From Neoconidiobolus thromboides FSU 785 (taxonomy: Eukaryota > Fungi > Entomophthoromycota), in the NCBI GenBank assembly GCA_025603075.1, contig MU626435.1:1-39204 (forward strand): 39,204 nucleotides of DNA. The letters run 5' to 3'. Positions 7,949 to 22,180 of this stretch are shown piece after piece; the stretch's first letter is position 1; every line of letters begins with the position of its first letter. A program made the translations under genes and the position numbers. Under the pieces are notes generated by a model. It had not been told where the DNA came from and did no database searches. It was given only the letters and a program-made list of their open reading frames with translations.

Positions 7949-8021
7949 AGCCCAACGCGGGGGTCGAACCCGCAACCTTGTGATTAAGAGTCACACGCTC
8001 TGCCGATTGAGCTAGCCAGGC
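7949..8021 (-). tRNA. tRNA-Lys-CTT: tRNA-Lys(CTT), intronless, copy 1
   Basis: GCCTGGCTAGCTCAATCGGCAGAGCGTGTGACT-CTT-AATCACAAGGTTGCGGGTTCGACCCCCGCGTTGGGC folds as a cloverleaf, with a TGTGA/TCACA anticodon stem, GTTCGA T-loop and a downstream T-run. Confidence 0.97.
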
Positions 8022-11465: not shown

Positions 11466-11538
11466 AGCCCAACGCGGGGGTCGAACCCGCAACCTTGTGA
11501 TTAAGAGTCACACGCTCTGCCGATTGAGCTAGCCAGGC
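11466..11538 (-). tRNA. tRNA-Lys-CTT: tRNA-Lys(CTT), intronless, copy 2
   Basis: Identical to the copy at 7949-8021; ~60 nt of 5-prime flank is also similar. Confidence 0.97.
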
Positions 11539-20067: not shown

Positions 20068-20205
20068 TCCAATTTATAAATAAAATAAAAAGATAAATCA
20101 TTCAAATTGAATTTCTCAAATCTAAAACTAAACTTTGAAAGTTTCAAAAAAAATGTTTCAAAAAGTTATTTTATTCAATATCTCAATAATAATAATAATT
20201 TTTAT

Positions 20206-21334
20206 TTATAAAAAAAATAATATGAATGCCAATAAAGTAAGTATTGCAATAAGTATTGGAATAAGTATAGAACTCTTAACATCACCTACTTTTTCTCCAA
20301 TCTTTTTAACTTTTTTAAAAGCAGATTGTAATTTATCTTGAGTAGTATCCATACGTGTATCAATTTCTTCAATTATTCTATTTAAAAAAATATTTGTATT
20401 AATATTTCCCTCAATATATAAAATATAAAACATTATTTACTCATTATGTAAATCTAATTCTTGATTTACTGTATTTGCTATTTCTTTTAAATTTTTAACT
20501 GTGCCTAAAATAGAATCTAATTGTTGATCTTGCTGTTCTATTATCATCTAAATAAATAATAGAATTGTAATTTTATTTTAAATTATTTCAAATTAATTAC
20601 TTGATTCTGTGCACTTAATTGTTGTCCATTATTTGTTTCCGTATTATTATTATCCGTATAAATTGGTTCCATTTCAATTGAATAAGAAGAAGAATACTAC
20701 ATTATAAAAGATTATTATAATAATTAAATTAATAAATTAATATTTACTTCTTGCTTCTTTTTTATTCCTTTCAATACGCTTTCTGGATCAGATATAGCTT
20801 CCTCAATATCCTTAATTTTTTAAAAGAATTTAATTGTTAAAATCATTATTATTATTATTATTATTATTATTTGAACTAAAGCTTACTCTAACTTTTTTTT
20901 TAATATCTAAAACATATTGTTGTCTTTTTATTAATTCACTGTTTTGAATTTTAAATTGTTCTCGATTCTCCTTGGCCATAGGTATTTTAAAAAGTTAATG
21001 ATAATAAATTTAAAATCAATTTTAATTAAAATTAACATTTAAAAATAAAATAAAAAGGATATTTATCGCATCTTGTAAGTCAATTAAGTAATTGTTGATT
21101 TCATCTATGTTCAATTCAATTTCTTTAGTTGTATTTTTATATTCTTCATTGTCTAAATTCTTAATTCCTTTTAATATCCTTAACCAACTTTTAAATAATT
21201 GTTCAATTTGAGTTATATTTTCTTGTACTTCTCTATATTAATTAATTGATGATTAGCTTTTATAAAATAATAGTGAAAAAATACAATCAAGTTTACTTCT
21301 GTACTAAAAAAAAGGGATCTTCGTTAAAATTCAT
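20206..21334 (-). CDS. STX6: Syntaxin-6/Tlg1 family Qc-SNARE, 246 aa, 7 exons (21334-21297, 21232-21063, 20981-20887, 20810-20748, 20696-20601, 20547-20441, 20377-20206)
   Basis: N-terminal EDPFFLV, Habc helices, SNARE motif EQQDQQLDSILGTVKNLKEIA and C-terminal TM anchor; 741 nt when intron 2 is spliced AT-AC. Confidence 0.92.
20982..21062 (-). other. U12-type (minor spliceosome) AT-AC intron, 81 nt, phase 1
   Basis: 5-prime ATATCCTTTTT; branch-like TCATTAAC with the branch A 13 nt upstream of the 3-prime end; 3-prime AAATAC. The junction gives DLQDAI-T-MAKENREQFKI. Confidence 0.9.
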
Positions 21335-21569
21335 AGTTATATTAATATAGTTTTTATATAAAAGAATAAATATTGAATTTGAATTTGGAATTCTTCTAGA
21401 ATCAATTTTAAGCCACTCAAGCATACTATTTTACATCATTTAAAATTTAGTTCATTGATTGGCTAGAATCTTAAATTAAAATTAGCATTAAATTTTTTAT
21501 CTTTATTTTTACTCTTACTTTTATTTTTATTTTTATTATCAACTAATATAATATAATATAATAAATACA

Positions 21570-22180
21570 ATGGAATTACATCATATCGGAAAACATTGTT
21601 CATTAACTACATGTAAAAAGCTAGGTAAAAGATAATATGATATAATATTCAATTTGTATTTTAATATTTTTTTATTAGATTATTTACCTACTAATTGTAC
21701 TTATTGTCAAAAAGATTATTGGTAATTTAATAATAAAATAATAGAATAATAAAACAGAAGGCTTATTATATAAATCAATTTTATAGCGAAGATCATTCAA
21801 ATCCAGAAAAACATAATTGTGAATCCAATCATATTATAAAAGATGTTAAAGTACCAGTATGTCCTATTTGTAATCAACCAATACCAGTTAAAAAAGGAGA
21901 AATACCGGATACAAAAGTAATTCTTATTCTTATTCCTACATTATTCTTTATTAATTAACTCTTTTAAATCAGGTTAACGAACATATTAATTCAGGTTGCA
22001 AAATCAAAGAAAAAAAAATTGAAATATGCAATGCTAAATCTTGTAAAACAAAGATAACTCAAGTGTTTCATCAATGTAAATCATGTCAAAGAAAATACTG
22101 TTTAAATCATCGATTACCAGAAGAACATGAATGTCAATTAATTGATACTAAAAATAATTACAATTACAAAAGCAATAATT

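Follow-up and report, generated by a model that had tools for sequence, protein, structure and literature searches.

An AT-AC intron with U12-type signals, spliced out in RNA, in a syntaxin-6/Tlg1-like gene of the early-diverging fungus Neoconidiobolus thromboides

A syntaxin-6/Tlg1-like gene on contig MU626435.1 of Neoconidiobolus thromboides FSU 785 raises the question of which intron is removed after its second exon, the GT-AG intron of the public gene model or an AT-AC intron of the kind removed by the minor spliceosome. The DNA analysed, referred to here as the window, is a stretch of 39,204 nucleotides that makes up this whole contig (assembly GCA_025603075.1), and a first-pass annotation made from its letters had proposed a fungal host, a syntaxin-6/Tlg1 gene and the AT-AC reading. 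The host is indeed a fungus, early-diverging and insect-associated, of the order Entomophthorales, and we conclude that 21062..20982 on the minus strand is very probably a true AT-AC intron of the U12 type, lying in the orthologue of syntaxin-6/Tlg1 that this species carries.

Larue and Roy (2023, PMC10639083) reported 249 minor introns in the zoopagomycote Basidiobolus meristosporus, 205 in the glomeromycote Rhizophagus irregularis and none in Dikarya, and the Rhizophagus genes that contain them are enriched for vesicle transport (PMC10639083). Zoopagomycote as well as mucoromycote species have been reported to possess genes for U11, U12 and U6atac (Olthof et al. 2024, PMC11347168). Among animals, the U12 introns tabulated by Lin et al. 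(2010, PMC2831892, table 2) include intron 1 of Drosophila Syx6 (CG7736), which is of the AT-AC subtype and has a U12 orthologue in human STX6, the fish orthologues of this intron have switched to the GT-AG subtype (PMC2831892), and Syx6/STX6 is also listed among U12-intron genes by Pessa et al. (2010, PMC2952598, table 1). A literature search found no paper pairing Conidiobolus with the minor spliceosome; the surveys of minor introns in early-diverging fungi name neither Conidiobolus nor Neoconidiobolus, and the supplementary files that accompany PMC10639083 and PMC2831892 contain no mention of Conidiobolus or STX6.

The exons of the gene (Table 1) join into an ORF of 741 nt plus a stop, which encodes 246 residues laid out as an N-terminal STX6 domain, a SNARE motif and a C-terminal membrane anchor, with the hydrophobic tail SSILIPILIAILTLLAFILFFL. 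Leaving aside the AT-AC intron, the remaining five introns are 51-76 nt long, start with GTAA and end with AG, and all six junctions of the gene are present in RNA contigs. The proposed gene identity is supported both by Pfam and by known structures: profile PF09177 (syntaxin 6/10/61 N-terminal) matches exon 2 (E 1.9e-9, 38.4 bits against a cut-off of 29.4 bits) and exon 3 (E 0.004), and the PDB syntaxin-6 chains 1lvf (rat) and 4j2c (human) match with an E of 2e-10. The C-terminal part can be aligned gaplessly with two chains, the SNARE chain 2nps_D of syntaxin 6 (E 2.5e-5) and chain 1gl2_D of syntaxin 8.

Table 1. Features of the syntaxin-6/Tlg1-like gene and of the two introns proposed after its second exon, in window coordinates
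Feature	Position	Strand	Remarks
Syntaxin-6/Tlg1-like Qc-SNARE gene	20206..21334	(-)	7 exons, 246-aa product
Exon 1	21334-21297	(-)	spliced CDS
Exon 2	21063..21232	(-)	ends ...DLQDAI + first base (A) of Thr codon; Pfam profile 9-64
AT-AC intron, very probably U12-type	20982..21062	(-)	81 nt, phase 1, 9% G+C; joint 20981/21063 in RNA
5' splice-site motif ATATCCTT	21055..21062	(-)	perfect fit to U12 consensus RTATCCTT
Branch-site motif TCATTAAC	20994..21001	(-)	7/8 match to TCCTTAAC
GT-AG 'intron' of public model, GTTAAT..CCAAG	20971..21036	(-)	66 nt; without RNA support
Exon 3	20887..20981	(-)	begins CT (completes ACT = Thr), then MAKENREQFKIQNSELIKRQQYVLDIKKKVR; Pfam profile 66-95
Exon 4	20810-20748	(-)	spliced CDS
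Exon 5	20696-20601	(-)	spliced CDS
Exon 6	20547-20441	(-)	spliced CDS
Exon 7	20377-20206	(-)	spliced CDS

Exon 2, searched against 1.84 billion representative proteins, had a single match, the protein deposited for the window itself (P0001), and homologue searches with P0001, with alignment A1 and with region 1-113 yielded P0002 and P0003 only. P0002, which is 47% identical and reads DLQDSITMATSQPERF, comes from a polyadenylated metatranscriptome contig, that is, from mRNA, while P0003 belongs to a distant intronless Tlg1-like gene; a metagenome scan gave a single locus (L004), which was rejected as a SNAP-25-like paralogue rather than an orthologue. The contig that encodes P0002 (L002:1-100) begins ATG ACG GCT AAA GAC GAC CCG TAT TTT TTA GTT AAA GA, then GTACCG..., and to judge by these letters an intron has apparently been left in where the window gene has its intron 1 (after FLVK/FLVQK), which would be why the called P0002 protein starts late. 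The SNARE motif holds a peculiarity that is shared with the nearer of the two relatives. The Gln of ELEEQ in syntaxin 6 and of ELDEQ in syntaxin 8, a conserved residue established as the zero layer of the motif, aligns gaplessly to a His in ELDLH (20441-20452, minus strand); the same position is His in P0002 and Gln in the more distant P0003, and this entomophthoralean Qc-SNARE may have a lineage-specific, non-canonical zero layer.

U12-type introns are defined by a donor of the form RTATCCTT, by a TCCTTAAC-like branch site whose adenosine precedes the 3' splice site by about 10-15 nt, and by AT-AC or GT-AG termini. The first-pass annotation had described an 81-nt intron with such a donor, a branch A 13 nt from its end and an AC terminus, and its coordinates and description are exact. 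The donor can be extended to ATATCCTTT (21062-21054, minus strand), a perfect 5' splice-site match, and on the same strand the intron opens with ATATCCTTTTTATTTT and closes with TTATCATTAACTTTTTAAAATAC, its terminal AC occupying 20983-20982. The putative branch A is 20995, at a distance of 13 nt from the last intron base. The third base of the branch box is A where the consensus has C, and pairing with a U12 snRNA of the human kind would leave an A-G mismatch there; the 12 nt that follow the box read TTTTTAAAATAC, and in an intron so poor in G+C they are uninformative on a polypyrimidine tract either way.

The reading frame tells the same story at the level of the protein. With the intron left in, exon 2 hits a stop, as had been claimed; the stop comes after 13 intron-encoded residues and the product is 82 aa long. 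Removal of the intron gives the predicted DLQDAI-T-MAKENREQFKI within a complete 246-aa ORF. The exonic flanks read GAT GCG ATA A before the intron and CT ATG GCC AAG GAG after it (minus strand), and the Thr codon split between them falls on position 65 of PF09177, so that the profile runs gapless over the junction (9-64, 65, 66-95). Against the rat and human syntaxin-6 chains, only the AT-AC form of the protein aligns without a gap.

The motif by itself is weak evidence. RTATCCTT occurs four times in the window against five expected; the other three ATATCCTT matches are plus-strand ones, in a coding or an antisense context. A composite scan of both strands asked for a donor, for a branch box that departs from the consensus at no more than one position and lies 9-17 nt from the end, and for termini to match; its sole site was 20982..21062. 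In first-order Markov sequences with the base-to-base transition frequencies of the window (DNA of 25% G+C), the chance expectation of the composite motif is 0.31 per window, and 21% of random sequences hold at least one. No other U12-like intron was found in the window, a relaxed donor included. Our confidence in the intron comes from its exact position and phase, the gapless Pfam colinearity and the exact RNA joint in three runs. An Rfam search of the 39-kb contig, at the gathering threshold and with E <= 1, found no snRNA genes and two tRNAs. The tRNA genes, at 7949-8021 and 11466-11538 (both on the minus strand), have the same Rfam score (61.1 bits) and lie 3.5 kb apart in what is probably a segmental duplication.

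The RNA data are Logan contigs of public runs, for which the library type was guessed and strand is absent. The runs that contain the junction are X1 on the one hand and X2 and X3 on the other, representing two studies and two organism labels. The first-pass annotation had asked for RNA across 21063/20981, and the exact AT-AC joint is present in the contigs of all three runs: the pre-mRNA is cut at A21063/A21062 and at C20982/C20981, joining DLQDAI to T-MAKENREQF. The depths of the joint in X1, X2 and X3 are 465, 41.7 and 50.8, respectively; it skips 81 nt, reading GT..AT on the plus strand and so AT..AC on the gene strand, and it has zero ambiguous letters (both = 0), therefore no microhomology that would hint at a reverse-transcriptase artefact. 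The junction contig extends for only 30 nt on each side and carries the flag 'between: not known', and exon contigs end base-exactly at 21063 (X1, record 3) and at 20981 (records 1, 9 and 15). The donor, branch site and termini claimed for a U12-type AT-AC intron are accompanied by the predicted junction in RNA.

The same runs contain an unspliced contig, 20952-21092, of 141 nt (30 + 81 + 30), with depths of 942.8, 74.1 and 115.8 in X1, X2 and X3, which is the other arm of the assembly bubble that a mixture of spliced and retained RNA would be expected to give. The intron-retained share is accordingly 67%, 64% and 70%, and removal of the AT-AC intron is inefficient, with about two thirds of the steady-state RNA unspliced and translation of the retained form predicted to end after 82 residues. 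No retained form of the five GT-AG introns is seen in X1, the run of greatest depth, where bin depths equal the exon fractions; in X2, GT-AG introns 1 and 5 are partly retained too. Depth over intergenic 21368-21538 is zero, and the unspliced signal is therefore not genomic DNA.

Three further observations were made on the RNA of this region. An odd junction at 20821 in X2 and X3 (loose end TTTTAATATCT) was rejected as an alternative splice, being the ordinary exon 3-exon 4 junction misaligned, with three mismatches, into the similar 3' end of intron 3. Run X6, under a different organism label and with transcripts about 96% identical that probably come from a sister strain or species, leaves exon 3 uncovered and is uninformative on the AT-AC intron; in its alignment to window 20183-21333 the intron-1 joint is 21232/21300, with 67 nt skipped and 3 other letters (TTT) between the sides. 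The adjoining plus-strand zinc-finger (ZFAND2-like) gene has a 54-nt intron at 21619-21676 (+) that is spliced in X1, X2 and X6, its joint being placed at 21619/21674 or 21621/21676, the second of which reads GT..AG (cut +3).

How the intron would be removed can be proposed from the established rules for U12 introns. The donor ATATCCTT would be recognised by U11 and later by U6atac, TCATTAAC would pair with U12 snRNA so that the branch adenosine is bulged 13 nt from the 3' site, and catalysis would, from these motifs, fall to the minor spliceosome. The strong retention of the intron would fit such a route, as minor splicing is known to be slow (PMC2952598). By analogy with the published work on related fungi, the genome may encode U11, U12, U4atac and U6atac and the minor-specific proteins, as the first-pass annotation had predicted.

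The best surviving alternative is that the major spliceosome removes this intron at its AT-AC sites, as it does the rare U2-type AT-AC introns, in which case the locus would be uninformative on the minor spliceosome. Junction data locate the cut and not the machine that makes it, and the window, as described, yields no minor snRNA. The known U2-type AT-AC introns have U2-like donors and carry neither a ATATCCTT box nor, near their 3' end, a box like TCCTTAAC. Here, both boxes are present, whereas the five neighbouring U2 introns of the gene all begin with GTAA; the intron is itself strongly retained, as slow minor splicing would lead one to expect; and related fungi possess minor snRNAs together with hundreds of minor introns (PMC10639083, PMC11347168). 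We therefore give removal by the major spliceosome only a slim chance.

The public gene model offers a second alternative. The first-pass annotation had foreseen that a GT-AG-only predictor would mis-splice at a GTTAAT..CCAAG pair and insert NILFILFLN, and this is exactly the deposited model, K502DRAFT_367433, a hypothetical protein of N. thromboides FSU 785 (P0001; contig MU626435.1) of 251 residues whose junction region, DLQDAINILFILFLNENREQF, includes that 9-mer. Were the model right, the mRNA would use GTTAAT..CCAAG (21036..20971) and the AT-AC joint would be minor or artefactual. The model has the standing of a deposited annotation, is in frame and has GT-AG ends; its joint, 20970/21037, is found in the contigs of none of the four runs, against three for 20981/21063, a count to be read with the tendency of contigs to lose rare variants, which leaves room for low-level use. 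The protein also speaks against the model: a hydrophobic 9-mer is gained, TMAK is lost and the PF09177 profile is interrupted. Aligned with 1lvf and 4j2c, the annotated form breaks colinearity with a 5-residue gap at NILFILFLN (ETISIV-----EANPRKF), and the same 5-residue gap appears against P0002 and against P0003. That the mRNA follows the public model is in our view very improbable.

Hardly more credible is the reading that reverse transcription, assembly or alignment produced a false joint in a pseudogene broken at this point, for which it can be said that the junction is based on 60-nt de Bruijn unitigs and that two thirds of the signal is unspliced and stop-bearing, and against which stand the recurrence of the identical joint in three runs that span two studies and two organism labels, the lack of any repeat at the joint, ends that match textbook U12 signals base for base, a full-length conserved ORF as the result, and confirmation of all five other junctions.

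With a U12-type AT-AC intron as the preferred reading, K502DRAFT_367433 is to be corrected to ...DLQDAITMAKENREQF..., giving 246 aa rather than 251. The locus provides RNA evidence, at the level of the junction, that minor-type splicing operates in an entomophthoralean fungus, and it is a concrete case of GT-AG-only gene prediction concealing an AT-AC intron, which biases minor-intron counts in early-diverging fungi. Fungi of this kind were already known to have U12 introns, and syntaxin 6 to have one of the AT-AC subtype, and we regard the present intron as a solid but ordinary example that leaves current understanding unchanged and brings a useful annotation correction. If its position is that of the animal STX6 intron, one further minor intron could be followed back to the ancestor that fungi and animals share. 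Taken jointly, the observations allow a broader reading, which we put forward tentatively and at somewhat under even odds: the intron might correspond, by position and descent, to the AT-AC intron of animal STX6, its subtype kept since the opisthokont ancestor; the retention of about two-thirds, with its truncated 82-residue frame, might be a rate-limiting step that controls how much of this TGN-endosome SNARE is made; and annotation-based surveys might undercount the minor introns of Entomophthorales as GT-AG-only callers overwrite them.

Set beside known systems, the intron has AT-AC termini in common with the U2-type AT-AC introns and differs from them in possessing both the donor box and the near-3' branch box. 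With the minor introns of early-diverging fungi (Basidiobolus meristosporus, Rhizophagus irregularis and Neocallimastix californiae) it shares the consensus signals and the bias away from phase 0, and those fungi show vesicle-transport gene enrichment and have minor snRNAs, with Dikarya lacking the system (PMC10639083; PMC11347168). The surveys of these fungi differ from the present analysis in that they classify annotated introns; here the annotation has a different intron, of the GT-AG type, and a survey based on annotation would probably miss it. The closest parallel is the syntaxin 6 intron of animals (fly and human), which belongs to another kingdom and is alike in gene family, U12 class and AT-AC subtype. 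In the fungal protein the intron interrupts the N-terminal Habc domain, at a codon that aligns, by a hand count from the alignment, to Ser69 of human syntaxin 6, and the fungal and animal STX6 introns are likely candidates for positional orthology.
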